From assembly GCA_000388065.2 (NCBI GenBank), contig KB932202.1: 64,000 nucleotides of DNA; one strand, written 5' to 3'. The stretch's first letter is position 1; every line of letters starts with the position of its first letter. This stretch comes from Fonticula alba ATCC 38817. Taxonomy: Eukaryota > Protista > Nucleariida. This document shows, piece after piece, positions 53,148 through 64,000 of this stretch. The notes below the pieces were generated by a model. That model searched no databases and had not been told where the DNA came from. It was given only the letters and a program-made list of their open reading frames with translations. The translations under genes were made by a program, and so were the position numbers.

Positions 53148-54807
53148 AAGGGGCGGGGGAGAAGCACATCAGCAAAGATCCTCGCCGAGTCAGACCGAGG
53201 CAATGACCTCCGGCAACCCCCCTCCCCCCCCCACGCGGCAGACAGACATACGCAGGCAGGCGCCTGCGGGAGGTGGAGGCAAGGAAAGGGGGGAAGAGCG
53301 ACGCACCTCAATGTCCGCCACCGGGGTCACCTCCGGAGACCGGAACAGCTCGCGGACCTCCTTGTAGGGCCAGTTCTCCGGGACGGTGTACCTCTTGGGG
53401 TCCAGATTCTCCAGGATGGTCTCGATGTTGCGGTGCTTGCGGATGAATTCCAGGGCACGCTTGGGGCCGACGCCGCGGATGGTGTCGCAGAAGTCACACC
53501 CCAGCAGGATGCACAGGTCGATGAACTCGTCCATCGTGAGTTCCAGCAGCTCCAGCACCCGGGGGAGGGAGTACTCGGCGATCGGCACCTTGCGCGCCTC
53601 GCTGTATGTCAGATGCCGGAGCAGGATGGTCGACCCGCACGTCAGCGAGTCCATATCCTCGGAGGCGGTGGCATACACCAGCCCTTTGGCGGCCATGACG
53701 GCGCACTGGGCCTCTGCCTCGCAGGGGGCCTCGATGTAGGGGATGCCCATGAGCGTGAGCAGGCGCTTGCACTCGGCCGTGTGCTCGGCCGTGACGCGCA
53801 CCGTCCGCCGGGAGAACTTGTCCATGTCCGCCTGGTTGCCTGGGGACGGGGCAGGATGGATAGGGGCCGGGGGCGGGGGGGGCAGGGGGGGTCGTAGCCC
53901 GGCGGGGAGCAGCGAAAAGGCGAGCGGTCAGTGTGCGGGGACGTTTGCGCGGTGTGTCGGGGCCTGGCATGGACCGGGCCCCTTGCGCGCATATCGCTGC
54001 TCGTGCGCATGGCCGGCTCCTTGCCGGGCCCTCGGCGACACGTACCCTGCTCAGTGGCCGTCTTCAGGCTCTCTTCGGCCTGCTGGCGGCGCTCCGAGCG
54101 TTTGGACAGCTCGCCGCCCTTGAGGGCCGGCGGCTTGCCATCGAACACGTACACGGGCTTGATGCCGTTCTCGACCATGCGTGCCGTGCGGTAAAGCATG
54201 CCCATGAGGTGGCTGCCGGTGGGGCGGGTGCGGGGGGCGGGGNNNNNNNNNNNNNNNNNNNNNNNNNNNNNNNNNNNNNNNNNNNNNNNNNNNNNNNNNN
54301 NNNNNNNNNNNNNNNNNNNNNNNNNNNNNNNNNNNNNNNNNNNNNNNNNNNNNNNNNNNNNNNNNNNNNNNNNNNNNNNNNNNNNNNNNNNNNNNNNNNN
54401 NNNNNNNNNNNNNNNNNNNNNNNNNNNNNNNNNNNNNNNNNNNNNNNNNNNNNNNNNNNNNNNNNNNNNNNNNNNNNNNNNNNNNNNNCGGGGCTCCGGA
54501 GCAAAGGAGAGAGGGGGGGGGGGGGGGGGAGACCGCCTGGGGAAATCGGAGGGCCAACGCCCGACAGAAGAGGCGGGGAGGGAAAGACAAGAAAGCGGGC
54601 GGGCGCTCGGCCGGCGCACCTGGTGACCTGGCCCGAGTCATTGGTCAGCACACCGCCGTCGGCCTGGCGCACGGCGATCAGGAACTGGTAGATGGACATC
54701 GACGCGTCGATGGCGATCTTCCGGCCGAACAGATGCTTGATCTCCATGTGCCGGACCGCCGTGCCGGCGACGTCGGCAATCAGCTGCGAGAGGCCGCGGA
54801 TACCCAT
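52615..54807 (-). CDS. FEN1: Flap endonuclease 1 (384 aa)
   Basis: Exons 54807-54620, 54212-54046, 53839-53307, 53093-53029, 52816-52615; total 1155 nt. Motifs [74 protein letters not shown], and PCNA PIP box QSRLDGFF. Confidence 0.97.
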
Positions 54808-55442: not shown

Positions 55443-55918
55443 ACATGCGCCTCGGACGGAGGTGGCCGGCGTACGCCCGGATGTCCGGATGCGGTGTTCC
55501 CGCGCAATCTCGGCCAGCCCGCCGGCCCGCACCCCAGGCAACTGCCAGACACCCCAAGGGGCCCCCGCCTGCCTGGCATGCTTGCCCGGCCCCGAGGCCA
55601 GCGCTTCCCTCCTCCCACTTGTCCCCCCGTTCGCCTCCCTTTGCTCGTGTCTCGCCTTACCTCGGTCCCTGCGTCGGGCCTCTCTGCTGGTGTCGGGTCC
55701 GTCGCACCACAGGTTGGGCCACCTCACCACGCCTCCCCCTCCAACTGCAAACACACGCACACACGCACACNNNNNNNNNNNNNNNNNNNNNNNNNNNNNN
55801 NNNNNNNNNNNNNNNNNNNNNNNNNNNNNNNNNNNNNNNNNNNNNNNNNNNNNNNNCACACACACACGCGCACACACACACGCCCTCCCCCTCATCCCCG
55901 CCCCGCCACATCTCCACA

Positions 55919-58900
55919 ATGCCTGGAGGCTGGTGGCCGGGCGAGGCCGACCCGGGCATCGAGCTACGCACAGTGTCACCGCCGCCCAGGCCGGAAGTCC
56001 GCGACGTGGACGACGGGGAGACTTCCGACACGCCGGCCGAGGCGGCGGATCCGTGCGACAGCCGGCCCACCGAGCACCACGGCCCGAGCATTCCCCCAAC
56101 AGACCCGGCCCCCCGGGGGATCCTCAAGCGCGCGGCGCCCGGGTCGCTGGCCTCCTCGGAGGGCCTCCCCTGGGCCGGGCCCGGGATGCCGGCGTTCGCG
56201 GCCGAGTCGCACGGCTCGCACGGGGACCCGCATGGGAACCGGCCCAGGGACCGGCAGGGCGATCGCCAGGGCAGCCTCGCCAGCGCCTCCAGCGACCATG
56301 TGGCCGGGGCATCGAGCGAGGCGGTGGCCAGCGCGTCGAGTGGCACGCTGGCCGGCGGCCGGCCGGCCGGGCTGGACCACCGCATCGCCTCCATCTTCAC
56401 CTGGGTGGCGGACACCTTCAGCCTGCATGACTTCATCGAGATCGAGCATGTCCCGGTGGAGGATTTCCCCTTCGCGGGGCTGGCGGCCGCCGGGTCCAGC
56501 TCCGGGTCCGAATCCGGCTGGGCCCCGGGGCCGCAGTCGCCGGCCAGCGAGGTCGACGCGTATGCCCGGTCGCCGGGGCATGTGGCCCCGGTGCCCGGGG
56601 ACCTCCGCCGGGGGTCCATGCAGCAGCCGCCGCGGCCGCCGCTGGCCGCCGGCCGTGCGGCGGCCCACCACAACCGGCGGTCCTCCACCCCCTCGACGGT
56701 GCCGCACCTGGAGGGCCGGCGGTACTCGCTGTCGGCCGGGGGCCGGCATGACCGCCAGGCCCCGGGGCCCGGGGCCACGATGGTGGTGGCCGGGCCGCCG
56801 GCCACGCCGGACCGCTCGACCTCGCCGGCCCCCGGGCTGACGGTCCTCTCGGCCACGGCCCCGGGCGGGCGTCTTGCCACCGCCGGCAGCCTGCTGGCCG
56901 GGCCGGCCAGCGGGGTGGCCGCCCCCGGGCCGCTGCTCACGGTGCGGCCCTACTCCCCGGTGCGTGTGCAGCGGGCCGGCCCGCGGCATGCGCCCTTCAT
57001 CGGCGAGGCGGAGTTCCGCATGCCGTCGACATTGGCCCCACTGGCCCGGCCGGCCCTCAGTGCCAGTGTCCTGTCCATGGCCGGTGGCGAGGGGGCCTCC
57101 CCGCCGCCGGGGGCCTATTGGCCGGGGGGGTCCCCGTCACCGAGGCCGGCGCCGGCGGATGGCGGCCCGTCGGCCCTGGGCATGGGCCACGGGTCGGCGG
57201 TTTCCTCGCCAGCATTGTCGCCGTCCTCATCGAGCCCGGGCGCGGTGTGCTCCTCGGCCTCCTCCTGCTCTTCCTCGGCCTCGGCCTCCTCCTCCTCCTC
57301 CTCCTCCTCCTCCTCCTCCTCCTCCTCCTCCTCGGCCTTGGGCTCCCTGCCGAGCCCATCGTCGATGGAGGCCTCTTCCGCGGGGTCCGGCCGGTCGGCC
57401 TGGGCGTCGGGCGAGCTGCACCCGGCGCCGGGGGTCCCGCTGCCGGCGGCCACCCGGCCGCGCATCCGCATCCGCCTGAGCCGGCGCCCGGAGGGGGACC
57501 TGGCCGATCCGTACCTCCGGCCGCCGACCGTGCATGGGCCCGGGTCCGCGGCCCACGGGCCGACCTCCGGCGTCCGGGCCCTGCGGTCCAGCCACCTTCG
57601 CTTGGCCAGTCGGTCGGGGTCCTACGCCGGGTCGTGCGACTCGGCGGTCCTGGTGGTGACGCCGGTGGACCTGTTCTTCCTCGGGCGCAAGTGGCAGTCC
57701 CCCGGGGACAAGCGCCGGGAGCGGCGTCTCGTCCGGCAGCTGGACACGTCGCGCCCGGCGCGACTCGTCGCCCGGCCGGGCCAGGCCACCCCGGCCGCCG
57801 TCGACACCACCCCCCCGGATGTGACGCGCGACCTGGCGGACGGGTTGCCGGCCGTGCCGAGCCTGGCCGCCACCCCTGGCGGGCCTGCCGACCGGGTTCC
57901 CTCCCTGGCGGCGGATGCCGCCCCCTTGCCCGGGCCTGCTGCCACCATTACGGCGATCCCGGTGGCCGATCGGCGGGGGTTCTCCGCCGGCGCCGGCGGC
58001 TTGACCATCCACACGGCCGGGTCGCCGAGCACCGCCGGCCCGGCCAGCCCCCTGGCCATGCGCACGCTCACCGGCACGACCACCTCGGCCGACTCGGCCC
58101 CGGTGTCGCCGGTCAACCCGGACATTGACATCGCCTCCTTTTTCGGCACCTGGAGCCCGGGGGACCTGGACCCCGATGAGGAAGAGGAGGAGGAGGAGGA
58201 CGACGACGACGAGGAAGACGACGAGGAGGATGACGAGGAGGACGGCGAGGAGGATGACGCTGACCCGAGCGGCCCCCTGGGCGCCGGGAGCATCACACCC
58301 CCGACCGATGGCGGCTCCACCTCACTTGCCTCGCCCTCGTCGGCCCCGCAGTCGGCGGCCGAGCAGGGCGCCGGGGTGGTCGCCGCCCCGCCGCCAGCTG
58401 CATTGCGCGTGCGCTCTCCCCGCCTGGCTCCCGCCCGGACGCGGTGCGTTCTCTTGCTGCTCCCTGCTGCTCCCTGCTGCTCCCTGCTGCTCCCTGCTGC
58501 TCCCTCTCTCCCGCCGCCGCGCGCGTGAGCGCCTGCACACACGCCTGCACACATATCCTCACATATCCTCACATCTACACCCACACCCCCAAATGCGCAC
58601 GTCCATGCTCACCTTCGCACCTCCTCGGGACGCGGCATGCCGCCACGACAGGGTGAGCCATCCGCAGTTTGCGGCCGGGCCATTGCCCGGCGGCCCGACG
58701 GACCGGCCGGCACCGAGCCTGGTGGCCGGGGCCCGCGCGGCGGCGCTACTCGGCGCCCGGCGATCCTCCTGGGCGCCCGTGCTGCTGGACATGAATGCGC
58801 GCAATGCCCGCGGGGGCATTCACAACAAGGATTCCTGGGCACCACGGGCGGCCGGCGGGGGCCCGGTTACGGCGGCCCCGGCGCCGGGCTTCGGCCCGAA

Positions 58901-60363
58901 TGACCTGGCCGCCTCGTCGTCGCGCGGGGGCCTCGCCTCGTCGGGCGGGCCTTCGCCCCAGCCCGGCGGGCTGGCGGGGTCCGTGGGCGACGGCCCGGCC
59001 GGGCCCGGGCTGCTGGACGCCAGCTCCTCGGGGGATGCCCTGCCGGGGCCCGGGTCCGGGGGTCCTTCGCCCAGTCGGTTTTCCTGGCGCGGGCGTCCGG
59101 CATCGATGGTCGGGCGCCCGGTCGAGGGGGCGGACGCCCAGCGGCCCGGTCGGGGGACCGGCGGCCCGGCCTCCGCCGGCACGGTGCCCGGCCCCGGGCG
59201 AGCCGCCCTCGGGCCGACCCGGCGGCGGTCCACCATCACGTCGGTCTTTCGCCGGCCGCGCACGCGCTCCGGCTCGGACTCCGACCAGTCGGTGGATGTG
59301 GGTGCTTCTGGCGACCTGCGATCCTGGCATGCCTCCTCGTCGCCCTCGCCGAGCGGGTCCTTCGGGTCTTCCTCCGGGGCGTCGGCCGTGGAGGATGCCG
59401 AGGGGGCCGGGCTCCGGGTGCGGCCGAGCTCCCCGCCGCCGCCGCCGGCGCCGCCGCCGCCGGCGGGCCCGGAGGCGGCCGACTTGCCCGAAGCCTCGGC
59501 CCCGGATGCGGCGCCCGGCATGGGGCTCGCCCCCGGGGCCGGTGCCGTGGCCGGCGTGGCGGCGATCACCATGGCCGAGGGCACGGCCGCGACACCCGCC
59601 CTGCAGGCGGCCGCCTCCCCGGGGCCGGCCGGGCCCGTTGTGGTGGTGGCCCCGAGCGCCGACCCGGGCCGGGTCGATGGCATCGGCGCCACGGTGGCCG
59701 GGCCCCCCTCCCCGAGCCAGGCTCCCGGGGCCCTCCGACGGAATACCTACTCCACGTCGGCCCCGTCGTCGGGGCTGTCCTCGGCGAGCCTCTCGCTGCC
59801 GGGGTTCCGCCGGCAGCGCTCCGACCAGTCGGTGGCTTCCTCCATGGCCGAGGGGCCGGCGTCGTCCGGCCGGCGGCCCGGCACCCGGCGGCGCTCCCAA
59901 GCCAAGGACATGTCCCCCTCCAGCCGGCCGTCCATCGCGGCCGTGGTCATTTGGGTGAATGCCCTGCTGATCACCATCGGCGTGGCGGTCATCGTCACCG
60001 TGGCCCTGGTCGGCTCCAGCCGGTACATGCTCGCATGCCTCGCTCTCTTTGCACCGGCCACCGGCCGCTCCCCCTTCCCAGCTAACCCGCCTCGCCGGTC
60101 GCGCCGCAGCGAGACCACCTCCACCATCCGCTCGCTGGCCAACCAGCTGGCCAGCCGGGCCCAGATCAATCTGGACCTGGCGCTTGACAATGCCGAGGCC
60201 CTGAGCTCCGTGCACTTGCCCTACTTCCTGCACTTTGGCCACACGCCGGCCGACTGCCAGCGTGCCTCGCGACCGCTGCTCTACTCCATGCAGCATGAGT
60301 CCCTGCTGGTCAGCATGGTCCACCTGTCGGACGGGCTGGTGCGTGCATGGGTCTCCCGTCGTG

Positions 60364-60394
<31 letters not shown>

Positions 60395-63152
60395 TGTAGC
60401 CCCTCTCTCCGTGCCCCTTTCTTCGCTTTCTCTTTGCCGCCCTCCCGGCCGCCATCGCTCCGCCCACCTTCCCCTCACCAGCCCCACACCGATGATCACA
60501 TCTGCCCCCCCCCCCCCTCCTTTCTCCCTGCGGCTGGGCGGCCCGGCTGCCGCAGGGGAGTTTCTGCGGCGCCTCGCGCGCTGGCACCTCGCCCAAAGAC
60601 GACCTCGGGGTCCGAGTCACCCGCATGCAGCCTCCGGCCGGGGACCCCACCGGCCCGGCCACCATGCAGCTGCAGGAGTTCCTCCACCATCCGGAAGCGT
60701 GCTCCCTGTCGGACTTCTCCTGCCCGGTGTTCGACTACCCGCCGCCGCTCGGGCGGGGCCCGGAGTTCTCCCGCTCGTATGACCCCCGCACGCGGAGCTG
60801 GTTTCAGGCGGTACGCCGGCTGGCCCTTCCCGAAGGGCTTTCCTGCTGGCTTTTGCCCTCTGCCTCTCGCGGTTGACTGACACCCGATGCCCCCCCCCCC
60901 CCTCCCTCCTGTGCGCATCTGCCCGCCAGGCTGCCGCCACCACCGGGCCCGTGTGGTCGGATATCTACCTCTACTCGTCGTACCACCGCCTGGGATTCAC
61001 GGTTCGTGGCTACTGTGTTGGGGTCCTCCCCTGCTGCTCCCTCTCTTCCTCCCTCTCTCTCTCTCTCTCTCTCTCCCTCTCCCCCGTCTCAGCTCATCCC
61101 CTGCCGACACCGGGACTCACCCATCACCGGGTCTCGCCCACCACCGGCCCCGGGCTGCCTGCCGGACGCACACGCTAGACCGCCCTCCGGGCGGTGCCCC
61201 TCGACAGTGCGGCACCCAGGCCGGCCAATCACCCGGTCATCATGTCGACGGACGTTTCGCTGGCCGAGTTGTCCACCTCCCTGCGCAAGCTCCTGACCGA
61301 GGTCCAAAGCCAAGGGGACATGGCCTCCTTGGGGGTCGTGTCGAATGGCGCACACCTGACCCGACGCTCGGCCCTGACCCGGATGGCCGATGCGCTAGAC
61401 CGGCTGTGGCCTGGCCGTCGGGCCGGCGCTGCCACCGCCTCGCCCACAACCGGGGATCTCGGCGCGCCGACACTCTTGCTCCTGGATGCGAAGGGCTTCC
61501 TGGTCGGGGTGGCCTTGAGCGAGAGCCACCTCGAGAGCGCGGTCTCCGGATCGGGCTCCGGCGAGCAGGTAAAGCTGGTCAAGACCCCGGCCGAAGGTGC
61601 GTGTTTTTTCCTCTCCCTCTCTCTCTTTTTCTCTGTTTCTCTTTTTCTCTGTTTCTCTGTTTCTCTCTTTCTCTGTTTCTCTCTTTCTTTCTCTCCCTCC
61701 CTCCATCTCCCTCCCTCCATCTCCCTCCCTCCATCTCTCTCCCTCTCCCTCTCTCCCTTTTCTTCTCCCTTTCCACGGCGTGTGCGTGCGTGTGTCTCGA
61801 CCGCCATACTCACCCCGCTGCTTGGCCCTCCCCATGGACAGGCTGCACGCACACTTGCTCGGTTCGTGACTGTTGCATGGTGCACTCGCAGGACAGCGAC
61901 AATGCGCACATTCGCCTGATTGCGTCGTACCTGGTCGCCCGTGGTGTCATCCCCCCGGCGCCGACCGGCGCCCTGTCTGTGCCCGGCGCCCCGGATGCCG
62001 CTGCCAACGATGTCTCCTCCTCGCGGACCAGCCGTGTGACCTACTTCGAACCGGACGACCGGGTGCGTGCGCCGCGGCCCTGTCGCCTCTGTGGGCTTGC
62101 CATGCCGACATGCCTTCTCCTTTGGCCCCCCTGCTGACCCTGATGCGCCCGCCGGCACATGGACCTGCAGCTGTCCATCGCCCACCTGCAGTATCACCGC
62201 GGCTCGAACCTCCGGTGGCGCATCGTGGCGGCCTTCGACCGGCAGCAGCTGACCCTGGCCCTGGCCCGGCGCTATGGCACCATCGTCTCGGTGGTGGCGG
62301 TGCTGCTGCTGCTGCTGTCGGTCTTCTTGTCGATCCTGCTGAATCGCTTCCTGACCAAGTGCGTCGCATGCCGCCGCATCTCTTTGTCTCTCCCTTTCCC
62401 TCTCTCTGTGTGTGTCTCTCCTCCCACCCAGACGACTGCGAGGCTCACCATCCCGCTTTCCCCTCCCTCCCTCCCTCCCTCCCCCCGCACGGCCAGCCCC
62501 CTGCTGGCGGTGATCCGGCACCTAGAGGAGGTGGCCGCATTGCAGGAAAGCCCGCAGGTGGTCAAGCGGCGCTTCCGCCGGTTCTCCTTCTTCCCCACCT
62601 TCCGGTCGCTGTTCTCCTCCTCCGAGAAGATAGACGTGTCGCCCTCTGACGCCAGCCTCGCCACCGTTGGTCAGCCACGCCGGGCAGGCGGCTCCTCGTC
62701 ACTGGTATCCTCCAGCCGGCTGGAGATCGAGGAGGTCAATGAGATCCGCGACGGTGCGTGCATTCGCTTCGCCACGCCACGCCTCGGCGGCCGCGTCCGT
62801 TGTTTTCTGCCCTGGGCGCGGGACATCGCCTCCGCGCTCCTCGCAGCTGTTGCCGCCGACTGACGCTCCGTGCCCCGACAAACTGCCGGCCGCTCTCTGC
62901 CTTTGGGGGGGGGGGGGGGTCTCGCCCGGCGGACAGCCCTCCTGTCCTTGCGCGTCGGGTTGATTTCCTTCCTTCGGTATGCCCCGCGGCAGGTGGTCAC
63001 GCTGTTGGTCCGGGAAAACCGCCGGCCCATCCTCGGCGTCGATCCCACCGAGGTGACGGTCATGTTCTCGGACATCGCCAACTTCGCCGACCTGACGCAG
63101 GCCTTCGATGATGCCCATGTGGTGGAGCTTCTCCAGTGCGTGTGCACACACC

Positions 63153-63188
<36 letters not shown>

Positions 63189-63972
63189 CACCTCGGGCTG
63201 CTTTTCGCCGGTGCCGCTCGCAACCCCTCACGCTGACACGCCCCCCCCCCCCGCCGCGCCCCTGGCCAGGCGCTACCTCTCCTCCACCATGAGCGTGGTC
63301 GTGGCCAATGAGGGGCTCATCGACAAGTTCATGACCGACGCGCTGATGGCCTTCTGGAATGCCCCGGAGCCGTATCCCTACCCGGATGGGCATGCGGCGG
63401 CCGCCTGCCGCGCCGCCCTCGAGGCCCTGAGCAAGATGGAGGCCGCCCGGGCCGACTGGGCGCTGGCCGGCCTGCCGCATGTGCAGGCGCGCTTCGGCCT
63501 GCACACCGGCATCTGCCTGGTGGGCAATCTCGGCTCGCGGAATCGGCTGAGCTTCACATGCATCGGGGACAATGTGAATCTGGCGTCCCGGCTGGAGGGC
63601 CTCAACCGGGTGTACGGCACATCCATCGTCCTGTCCGGGGCCACTCGGGCCCAAGTGCAGGGGTCCTTCGTGACTCGGGTGCTGGATAATGTCACGGTCA
63701 AGGGCAAGGCCCAGCCGGTGACCGTGTGCGAGCTGATCGGCCACAATGACGTGGTCAGTGCCAATGTGGCGGCCAGCATGCGCTCCTTCGACCAGGCCCT
63801 TCAGCTGATGACCCAGCGGCGCTTCGCCCAGGCGGCCGTCTTGCTGGAGGCCTTCCAGGCCCAGTACCCGGGGGATTTGGCCTGCCAGGAGCACCTGGCC
63901 CTGGCCCGGCGCCTGGCCGCCGACCCGCCCCCCGACGAGTGGGTCTTCCTCCGGAAGATGGACACCAAGTAG
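55919..63972 (+). CDS. Receptor-type class III adenylate cyclase (long disordered N-terminus, TM, dCache-like sensor, TM, HAMP-like linker, cyclase; ~2128 aa)
   Basis: Exons 55919-58408, 58668-60022, 60110-60338, 60556-60810, 60930-61001, 61179-61596, 61842-62062, 62171-62358, 62497-62753, 62937-63135, 63270-63972; total 6387 nt, in frame. TM1 IAAVVIWVNALLITIGVAVIVTVALV. Cache motifs YDPRTRSWFQA|...WSDIY and LLLLDAKGFLV. TM2 IVSVVAVLLLLLSVFLSILL. Catalytic motifs VMFSDIANF, IDKFMTDALMAFW, FGLHTG...GNLGS, FTCIGDNVNLASRLEG, VKGK. Confidence 0.88.
57284..57332 (+). repeat. (TCC)n polyserine tract in the cyclase N-terminus
   Basis: Read directly from the sequence. Confidence 0.9.
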
Positions 63973-64000
63973 CGAAGTGCCGCCTCGGTGGCGTCCCCGT

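Follow-up and report, generated by a model that had tools for sequence, protein, structure and literature searches.

A candidate dCache-linked class IIIb receptor adenylate cyclase in Fonticula alba and its opisthokont relatives

Near the end of a 64,000-nucleotide stretch of contig KB932202.1 of Fonticula alba ATCC 38817 (assembly GCA_000388065.2; the whole stretch is referred to here as the window) lies what appears to be an intact nuclear gene of 11 exons for a receptor adenylate cyclase, in which a double-Cache (dCache) sensor, a HAMP-like linker and a class IIIb catalytic domain are combined in a single polypeptide belonging to an opisthokont family. The probability of this reading is put at about 0.8. 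Every module of the protein is homologous to its counterpart in bacterial dCache-HAMP-cyclases. Signalling by cyclic AMP (cAMP) in animals and fungi is usually described through G-protein-coupled cyclases with 12 transmembrane (TM) helices, through Cyr1 and through the soluble cyclase. If the present reading holds, a receptor that is itself the cyclase, built to a bacterial plan, has also been retained by unicellular opisthokonts, those on the animal side and those on the fungal side alike, and its sensor is invisible to standard domain annotation.

From its N-terminus, the protein would consist of a disordered cytoplasmic region, TM1, an extracellular sensor of the dCache_1 type, TM2, a HAMP-like linker with an insert, a cyclase-transducer motif, the cyclase domain and a tail resembling tetratricopeptide repeats (TPR), making up a type-II-like receptor that crosses the membrane twice. 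The features are listed below by their position in the window. Residue numbers (aa) refer throughout to an 884-residue short model unless stated otherwise, and GC3 is the GC content at third codon positions.

55919..58443, + strand: probable first coding exon; first ~842 residues of an apparently disordered, A/S/P/G-rich cytoplasmic N-terminal extension
58444..58651, + strand: proposed intron 0, as read from the sequence; 208 nt, GTGCGT donor, CGACAG acceptor
58652..60022, + strand: exon 1; remainder of the disordered N-terminal region, then TM helix 1 (about 59928-60022); GC3 0.90
59910-60022, 60110-60338, 60556-60810, 60930-61001, 61179-61596, 61842-62062, 62171-62358, 62497-62753, 62937-63135, 63270-63972, + strand: the exons of the short model
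60110..62260, + strand: double-Cache ectodomain, aa 39-466; exons 2-7 (60110-60338, 60556-60810, 60930-61001, 61179-61596, 61842-62062, 62171-62260) with introns 2-6 between them
60778..61253, + strand: five motif residues, Y189 (60778-80), R194, W196 (60799-801), Y212 (60966-68) and D248 (61251-53)
62261..62358, + strand: TM helix 2, aa 467-499, at the end of exon 7; hydropathy peak 3.09; aligns to TM2 of bacterial and eukaryotic homologues
62497..62989, + strand: HAMP-like linker; amphipathic sequence 1 (AS1) NPLLAVIRHLEEVAAL, an S/R/F-rich insert of ~50 aa, amphipathic sequence 2 (AS2) EIEEVNEIRDALLSLRVGL spanning intron 8 (62754-62936), then FLRYAP
62990..63753, + strand: single class IIIb cyclase catalytic domain, aa ~603-812, split by intron 9 (63136-63269)
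63754..63972, + strand: C-terminal tail; three helices (TPR-like), a short terminal strand, W875-x8-K884 and the TAG stop

Splicing and module order

Between 59910 and 63972 on the plus strand, ten exons are joined by nine GT..AG introns into one open frame of 884 codons, which runs from an ATG at 59910 to a TAG stop at 63970-63972. The introns of this short model are 87-245 nt long, and six of the nine have a GTGCGT donor. In a region that is 69% GC overall (window 59500-64000), codon-position GC distinguishes the two kinds of sequence, GC3 being 0.80-0.95 in all exons and flat (0.53-0.77) in the introns, which are pyrimidine-rich. (Their C+T content reaches 0.84, and they carry CT/CTCT or CACG micro-repeats and homopolymer runs of G or C, as in intron 5, 61597-61841.) Homology runs across the junctions. 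When the spliced protein is compared with 150 relatives by a local phmmer search, residues 560-884 align unbroken over the exon 8/9 and 9/10 junctions, and a bacterial sensor profile aligns straight over the exon 3/4/5 junctions through YDPRTRSWFQA/AAATTGPVWSDIYLY...GFT/TALRAV (slashes mark the junctions). The RNA-labelled run X1 contains 0.38 of the sampled words of the whole gene and only 0.12 of those from the stretch of intron 3, exon 4 and intron 4, which equals the fraction of words lying within exon 4 (42/338); DNA runs of the same organism contain 0.38-0.88 of the words of that stretch. These k-mer shares fit the removal of introns and support it indirectly. A hidden in-frame intron in the linker insert (62558-62674) was considered and rejected, its donor being non-consensus and the GC3 of the segment (0.90) that of coding sequence.

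The comparison of k-mer shares also took in a sediment metagenome (run X33) and a soil metagenome of 2022 (run X26). The latter contains 0.79 of the sampled words of window 60811-61178, and on this evidence the organism, or a near-identical strain, occurs in environmental soil.

Scanned for hydropathy over its whole length, the protein has only two segments of TM grade, at aa 7-38 (peak 2.67) and aa 467-499. Six of the 20 residues preceding TM1 are K or R, and because of this K/R-rich flank the ~430-residue segment between the helices is taken to be extracellular. Against a profile made from 26 bacterial cyclase sensors with a Pfam dCache_1 match, the spliced segment scores 61.5 bits, and the highest score among 200 shuffles is 5.2. 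Its score is 140 bits against a eukaryotic profile built without it, compared with 73.6 bits against the bacterial profile, and the eukaryotic profile in turn matches bacterial dCache cyclases over its own full length at 70-125 bits. The sensor of the homologue P0171, modelled from a 56-row alignment, folds with high confidence (predicted local distance difference test, pLDDT, 91.3; predicted template modelling score, pTM, 0.86) into a stalk helix, two PAS-like modules and TM2, and all 50 of its top 50 PDB matches are dCache ligand-binding domains (TlpQ, McpU, PctA/D, TlpA/C, Mlp24). When the exons of the Fonticula gene were scanned separately, none of them gave a Pfam match to dCache_1 (PF02743). 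The profile comparisons support the assignment of the predicted ectodomain to the dCache family. In its membrane-proximal module, a loop specific to the Fonticula protein carries a cluster of four cysteines, C-x3-C-x4-CC, at aa 364-374 (exon 6, about 61844-61876). The relatives are without it; it could form disulfides or bind metal.

The linker behind TM2 is termed HAMP-like because Pfam calls no HAMP domain (PF00672) on exon 8 alone, nor in nine eukaryotic relatives. Both AS1 and AS2 align to homologues, two bacterial ones among them having sub-threshold Pfam HAMP matches (17-23 bits; cutoff 25). The ~50-aa insert between them is coding by its GC3 of 0.90 and is not found in the nearest relatives; P0074 and P0171 are without it. 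The transducer motif FLRYAP follows the linker, and its Pro is kept in 81 of 92 aligned rows.

For the cyclase domain (PF00211), exon 10 alone scores 36.1 bits (cutoff 21.9), and exon 9 adds a match of 17.4 bits at HMM positions 8-35. An alignment of 92 sequences identifies the catalytic set as D630 and D674 for metal, K670 and T747 for the purine, N754 and R758 for the transition state, and K795/K797 for phosphate. All of these are present and conserved, the metal, transition-state and phosphate residues at 84-100% over the rows; K670 and T747 fall on the corresponding Lys and Thr residues of CyaB and CyaC. Among solved structures, CyaB of Pseudomonas aeruginosa (5e-19) and CyaC of Spirulina (1.7e-17) are the best sequence matches, and both are also the top fold matches of an AlphaFold2 (AF2) model of exon 10, whose pLDDT is 92.2. 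Not one chain of an animal transmembrane adenylate cyclase (tmAC), soluble guanylate cyclase (sGC) or soluble adenylate cyclase (sAC) appears among the solved structures at E <= 1e-5. The sequence thus has the marks of the class IIIb subclass, and the domain is predicted to be of its Lys/Thr type.

The last ~70 residues follow a consensus common to bacterial and eukaryotic homologues, with the Trp present in 85 of 92 rows and the terminal Lys in 80 of 92. The AF2 model of exon 10 shows the tail as helices 164-181, 185-198 and 203-217 and a strand at 228-230, at a pLDDT of about 98. No solved counterpart of the tail was found among the fold matches; in the homologue P0001, TPR matches from Pfam land on it. 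P0001, which is metagenomic, is an unusual fusion in its own right, combining an extracytoplasmic function (ECF) sigma-70 factor (regions 2 and 4) with two tandem cyclase domains, each followed by the same TPR-like tail.

Much of this had been anticipated in an initial annotation of the sequence. The intron-rich eukaryotic gene that it proposed is borne out by the ten exons, the nine GT..AG introns, the open frame and the exon-wise GC3 signal. The two TM helices said to flank an extracellular region are exactly those of the hydropathy scan, and the proposed Cache signature YDPRTRSW..VWSDIY spans exons 3/4/5 and aligns unbroken to the bacterial sensor profile. Both metal Asp residues, the Lys+Thr pair and the N/R pair are in place in the 92-row alignment, and a layout of the bacterial class IIIb type agrees with CyaB and CyaC as best matches in sequence and fold, with no animal tmAC, sGC or sAC chain beside them. 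Some details need amendment. The two helices of the HAMP-like linker align to homologues as proposed, and an insert of ~50 aa lies between them; the conserved helical tail does end in W875 and K884, at a spacing of W-x8-K instead of the suggested W-x7-K; and the span of 59930-63972 holds the features assigned to it, while the gene reaches further upstream, to where GC3 periodicity begins at 55919.

Ligand, 5' end and catalytic competence

What would such a sensor bind? The published amino-acid-binding motif of the membrane-distal module consists of Y121, R126, W128, Y144 and D173 of PctA (Gumerov et al., PMC8915833), and it contacts the carboxyl and amino groups of the amino acid in bacterial receptors and in animal alpha2delta subunits (PMC8915833). 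In an alignment with 56 sensors, the Fonticula row reads YRW(F)YD, with all five motif residues present and a W-to-Y spacing of 16, as in PctA. The full motif also occurs in Capsaspora and in several ichthyosporean members of the family, and its Trp is replaced by Phe or Tyr in chytrids and aphelids. With the Y-R-W-Y-D motif intact in the distal pocket, the best guess at the ligand, a tentative one predicted from these residues, is an amino acid or a close derivative. There is also a real chance, short of an even one, that the sensor binds no amino acids and answers to some other cue, such as an amine, a purine, an organic acid, or osmolarity as in Dictyostelium ACG, with architecture and cAMP output unchanged. 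Domains of the dCache_1 type bind many classes of ligand (PMC8915833), and the loss of the motif Trp in the fungal-side relatives implies that ligand specificity drifts within the family. One Tyr adjacent to the motif is Phe in the Fonticula protein, its Y-to-D spacing exceeds the published one, and the membrane-proximal module and the Cys cluster C364-C374 could add functions of their own. However, the five defining residues are all there, at the W-to-Y spacing of PctA, and a bacterial dCache_1AA cyclase, that of Legionella, has been validated as an amino-acid binder (PMC8915833).

The receptor would presumably work as follows. A small ligand, most probably an amino acid or a close derivative, would bind in the membrane-distal Cache pocket and shift TM2; the HAMP-like bundle would relay the change, and the synthesis of cAMP from ATP would change with it. 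The enzyme would act as a homodimer with two symmetric sites, each cyclase domain giving its metal Asp pair and its Lys-Thr pair to one site and its Asn/Arg to the other. Modulation by CO2/bicarbonate may also occur, as in other Lys/Thr cyclases.

Where the gene begins is a separate question. An open reading frame (ORF) of 1,229 codons starts at 55919, with a GC3 of 0.91 compared with 0.72 and 0.68 at codon positions 1 and 2. This periodicity (GC3 ~0.9) starts at ~55919, ends near 58443 and resumes in the receptor frame near 58700, and the interior of the proposed intron 0 is without it. Splicing out intron 0 would join the upstream ORF in frame to exon 1, giving a protein of 2,145 aa from 11 exons without a stop, in a frame open over 6.4 kb. 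(The donor is the sole one with the gene's consensus GTGCGT; it and the acceptor were picked by eye, and other pairings were not tried exhaustively.) The 1,261 A/S/P/G-rich residues of the extension match nothing in Pfam and do not resemble any part of the relatives. However, the eukaryotic relatives also have 300-900 or more extra residues ahead of TM1. The gene therefore quite probably starts at 55919, which would add ~1,261 disordered residues to the short model, both intron 0 and the start codon being predictions.

An alternative start at an internal ATG, such as that at 59910, seems unlikely. The upstream ORF (55919-58528) would then be a separate gene or an untranslated oddity, and the extension no part of the receptor. 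Such a start would agree with an intron 0 that is itself only predicted, with an extension that has no homology to anything, and with a short model whose 884 aa already hold every functional module; an assembly gap at 55772-55866 also conceals the true 5' end. Against it, the strong GC3 periodicity of 55919-58443 comes back in the receptor frame at ~58700, the consensus GTGCGT donor and a CAG acceptor link the two frames exactly, eukaryotic relatives carry long extensions before TM1 as well, and almost no intergenic space is left. The gap in question is one of two N-run gaps in this part of the assembly (55772-55866 and about 54240-54520), which are flanked by simple repeats of the CA/CACG type. 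As it lies directly upstream of the proposed ATG at 55919, the true 5' end may be hidden in it.

Is the enzyme likely to work? It is very improbable that the gene encodes a pseudo-enzyme or a guanylate cyclase, or that it is decaying. The long branch of the Fonticula protein in the trees and the unusual insert in the HAMP connector could be read in that way, and cyclase function is a prediction from sequence only. However, the frame is open across 6.4 kb and 11 exons with its strong codon bias maintained, and the metal, transition-state and phosphate-binding residues are all conserved. The Lys-Thr pair specifies ATP, the few rows of the family that have Glu and Gly at these positions being exceptions.

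Relatives and evolutionary history

An exhaustive search with exon 10 returned 56,462 relatives, and the best full-length matches are eukaryotic. They come from chytrids (Rhizophlyctis, Borealophlyctis, Gaertneriomyces, Spizellomyces, Geranomyces, Thoreauomyces, Fimicolochytrium, Nowakowskiella), aphelids (Amoeboaphelidium protococcarum, A. occidentale), ichthyosporeans (Sphaerothecum, Amoebidium, Chromosphaera, Sphaeroforma, Creolimax) and a filasterean (Capsaspora). Metagenomic members lie on contigs with eukaryotic neighbours (a mitochondrial carrier, Med6, REV3, DNAJC9 and a STRIP-like DUF3402 protein); the basal sequences P0081 and P0110 are bacterial by gene context.

A tree covering the receptor from TM1 through to its C-terminus (701 columns) comprised 58 rows, 27 of them eukaryotic and 31 treated as bacterial; for only a few of the latter does gene context or the source name confirm this. 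The 27 eukaryotic rows are all set apart from the 31 presumed bacterial ones with a support of 99/99. Holozoa are monophyletic (100/100) and the Fonticula protein falls on the Holomycota side (100/96), where it and the metagenomic P0024 form the sister group of aphelids plus chytrids. This is the position expected for a nucleariid. In a second tree, of linker, cyclase and tail (330 columns), it belongs to a 95/93 clade of 34 eukaryotic rows and the long-branched P0110, and dinoflagellate proteins of the 'cya1' type form a separate clade. The protein thus lies within an opisthokont clade, with the Holomycota side favoured. Intron positions support the eukaryotic family independently: intron 9 coincides in codon and phase with an intron of the Fimicolochytrium gene P0013 (the chance of an exact match is roughly 0.01) and in codon with one of the 22 introns in the Sphaeroforma gene P0070.

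Bacterial relatives, found by a search of genome contigs, come from more than ten phyla at 31-47% identity. When contig matches from these phyla were placed in the trees, none entered the eukaryotic clade or was clearly its sister, and no donor lineage is evident among them. Contigs from metagenome-assembled genomes (MAGs) of Nanoarchaeota, Woesearchaeota and Patescibacteria (L009, L010, L014, L026) are among the best prokaryotic matches to cyclase and tail. Receptor cyclases would be unexpected in such reduced genomes, and the contigs branch among ordinary bacterial sequences, which suggests mis-binning. Just upstream of the gene, on the minus strand at window 53642-54807, are FEN1-like ORFs (the N-terminus resembles flap endonuclease 1), broken by an N gap and at least one intron. 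Such a eukaryotic housekeeping neighbour argues against contamination.

A recent, lineage-specific transfer from bacteria, or bacterial contamination of the assembly, can be practically dismissed, for although every module has bacterial homologues at 31-47% identity in more than ten phyla, no bacterial sequence is closer than the eukaryotic ones, the sensor scores higher with eukaryotic than with bacterial profiles (140 vs 73.6 bits), the eukaryotic clade is supported at 99/99 and has an intron position in common with other opisthokonts, and the locus itself has ten spliceosomal introns with the donor consensus and a GC3 like those of the host, adjoins the FEN1-like gene and turns up in several independent DNA runs of the organism. 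Since the clade spans Holozoa and Holomycota and shares an intron position, any acquisition from bacteria is older than the radiation of the opisthokonts and not peculiar to this organism. An ancient acquisition followed by full intronisation, as originally proposed, is upheld by the spread of this clade and by the intron shared with chytrid and ichthyosporean genes. Nesting within known eukaryotic adenylate or guanylate cyclase clades had been named as a finding that would speak against it; the clade is indeed eukaryotic, but it is made up of uncharacterised proteins of the same architecture and not of tmAC, sGC, Cyr1 or sAC.

We infer that the last common ancestor of the opisthokonts already possessed the receptor and that it is ultimately bacterial in origin. 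No animal, choanoflagellate or Dikarya member turned up in these searches, which would fit loss without demonstrating it. A bolder and rather doubtful proposal is that a single protein served as a nutrient sensor in the last common ancestor of animals and fungi, and that in it a contiguous bacterial-type dCache_1AA domain and a class IIIb cyclase would have converted extracellular amino acids into a cAMP signal without G-protein-coupled receptors or G proteins, the full motif surviving in Fonticula, ichthyosporeans and filastereans and having changed in chytrids and aphelids. The family is in any case a testable candidate for nutrient or mutual sensing in amoebae, chytrids and ichthyosporeans, and if the host is an aggregating nucleariid, the gene might, speculatively, be an input to starvation or aggregation.

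Several observations weigh against the reading of this gene as an intact receptor cyclase of an opisthokont family. Its splicing is deduced from homology, codon statistics and k-mer shares, and intron 0 and the start codon are predictions from the DNA sequence. In single exons, Pfam finds neither dCache nor HAMP, and it finds neither in most of the eukaryotic homologues; the dCache fold was modelled for the homologue P0171 and is carried over to the Fonticula protein by profile alignment. The ~50-aa insert might alter or uncouple signalling. In the motif region, Phe occupies the position of Y129 of PctA, and the Y-to-D spacing of 36 is slightly over the published x27-34. The Fonticula protein sits on a long branch (1.6-1.8 substitutions per site), a simple model applied to exon 10 by itself does not resolve it with the eukaryotes, and a placement with Holozoa is not rejected (approximately unbiased test, p-AU 0.45 and 0.087). 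Activity and ligand, finally, are predicted from the sequence.

Comparison with known systems

Bacterial dCache_1-HAMP-class III cyclases are the closest known design. Their modules follow one another as in the Fonticula protein, from TM1 up to the W...K tail at the C-terminus, and they share with it full-length homology, the motif and the Lys/Thr type; examples are the dCache_1AA cyclase of Legionella pneumophila, whose amino-acid binding has been validated (PMC8915833), and Rv2435c of M. tuberculosis (PMC4822843). The Fonticula gene differs from these in being nuclear and intron-rich, and its product in ~1,261 additional disordered residues at the N-terminus, the ~50-aa insert of the HAMP connector and further loops of the membrane-proximal Cache module, with an identity of only 31-47% in the catalytic domain. 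A bacterial subfamily (Spirochaetaceae and others; P0205, P0206, P0219, P0223, P0228 and others) has a sodium:dicarboxylate symporter domain (PF00375) fused to the dCache-cyclase receptor, which suggests transport-coupled sensing.

The opisthokont homologues (Capsaspora CAOG_00110, Sphaeroforma SARC_04445, Creolimax CFRG2146, and those of Amoeboaphelidium, Spizellomycetales, Rhizophlyctis and Nowakowskiella) share the architecture, the long N-terminal extension and an intron in the cyclase domain, and form one clade with the Fonticula protein in the whole-receptor tree. Identity to the nearest member is 29% over the receptor, and the chytrid and aphelid members are without the motif Trp, whereas the Fonticula protein keeps it. 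These proteins are annotated merely as 'hypothetical' or 'guanylate cyclase domain-containing'. In nine eukaryotic members, Pfam sees the cyclase domain only, and the family has probably been overlooked for this reason; targeted full-text literature searches found no description of an opisthokont dCache-cyclase family. Its members are nonetheless publicly catalogued as hypothetical proteins, and among bacteria this is a standard architecture.

CyaB of Pseudomonas aeruginosa (PDB 3R5G) and CyaC of Spirulina platensis (PDB 1WC0) are class IIIb cyclases of the Lys/Thr type, like the Fonticula enzyme, and CyaC was crystallised with bicarbonate, according to the PDB entry titles. However, they have other N-terminal regulators, and the solved constructs comprise the catalytic domain only, with nothing that matches the tail. 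AcgA of Dictyostelium is, like the Fonticula protein, eukaryotic, with one cyclase domain and two TM helices that enclose an extracellular sensor. This sensor is of the CHASE type and not of the Cache type. AcgA makes cAMP directly in response to an external cue, namely osmolarity (PMC5055082). It was not among the relatives retrieved, and the comparison is one of analogy, the two being functional analogues at most.

How do these findings bear on what has been published about Cache domains in eukaryotes? A Cache-cyclase has been reported there only for Naegleria, with fungal Cache limited to histidine kinases (Upadhyay et al., PMC4822843). The Naegleria protein, compared here by its published description, joins Cache to a bacterial-type cyclase as in Fonticula, but belongs to a different supergroup. 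All eukaryotic dCache_1 proteins are said to carry a VWA insertion, and fungi are said to lack dCache_1AA (Gumerov et al., PMC8915833). The present family would qualify two of these generalisations, that eukaryotic dCache_1 always comes with VWA and that Cache on the fungal side occurs only in histidine kinases. The amino-acid-binding motif is likewise present in the dCache_1 module of animal alpha2delta and CACHD1 (PMC8915833). In these proteins, however, the Cache is interrupted by the VWA insertion and has no enzymatic output, whereas the Cache of the Fonticula protein is contiguous and would drive a cyclase. If the ancestral nutrient sensor proposed above were real, eukaryotes would possess the 'universal amino acid sensor' in two independent lineages, the present one and that of the VWA-interrupted alpha2delta/CACHD1. 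The value of these results lies in the family-level picture and in a testable prediction of the ligand, not in the single gene.

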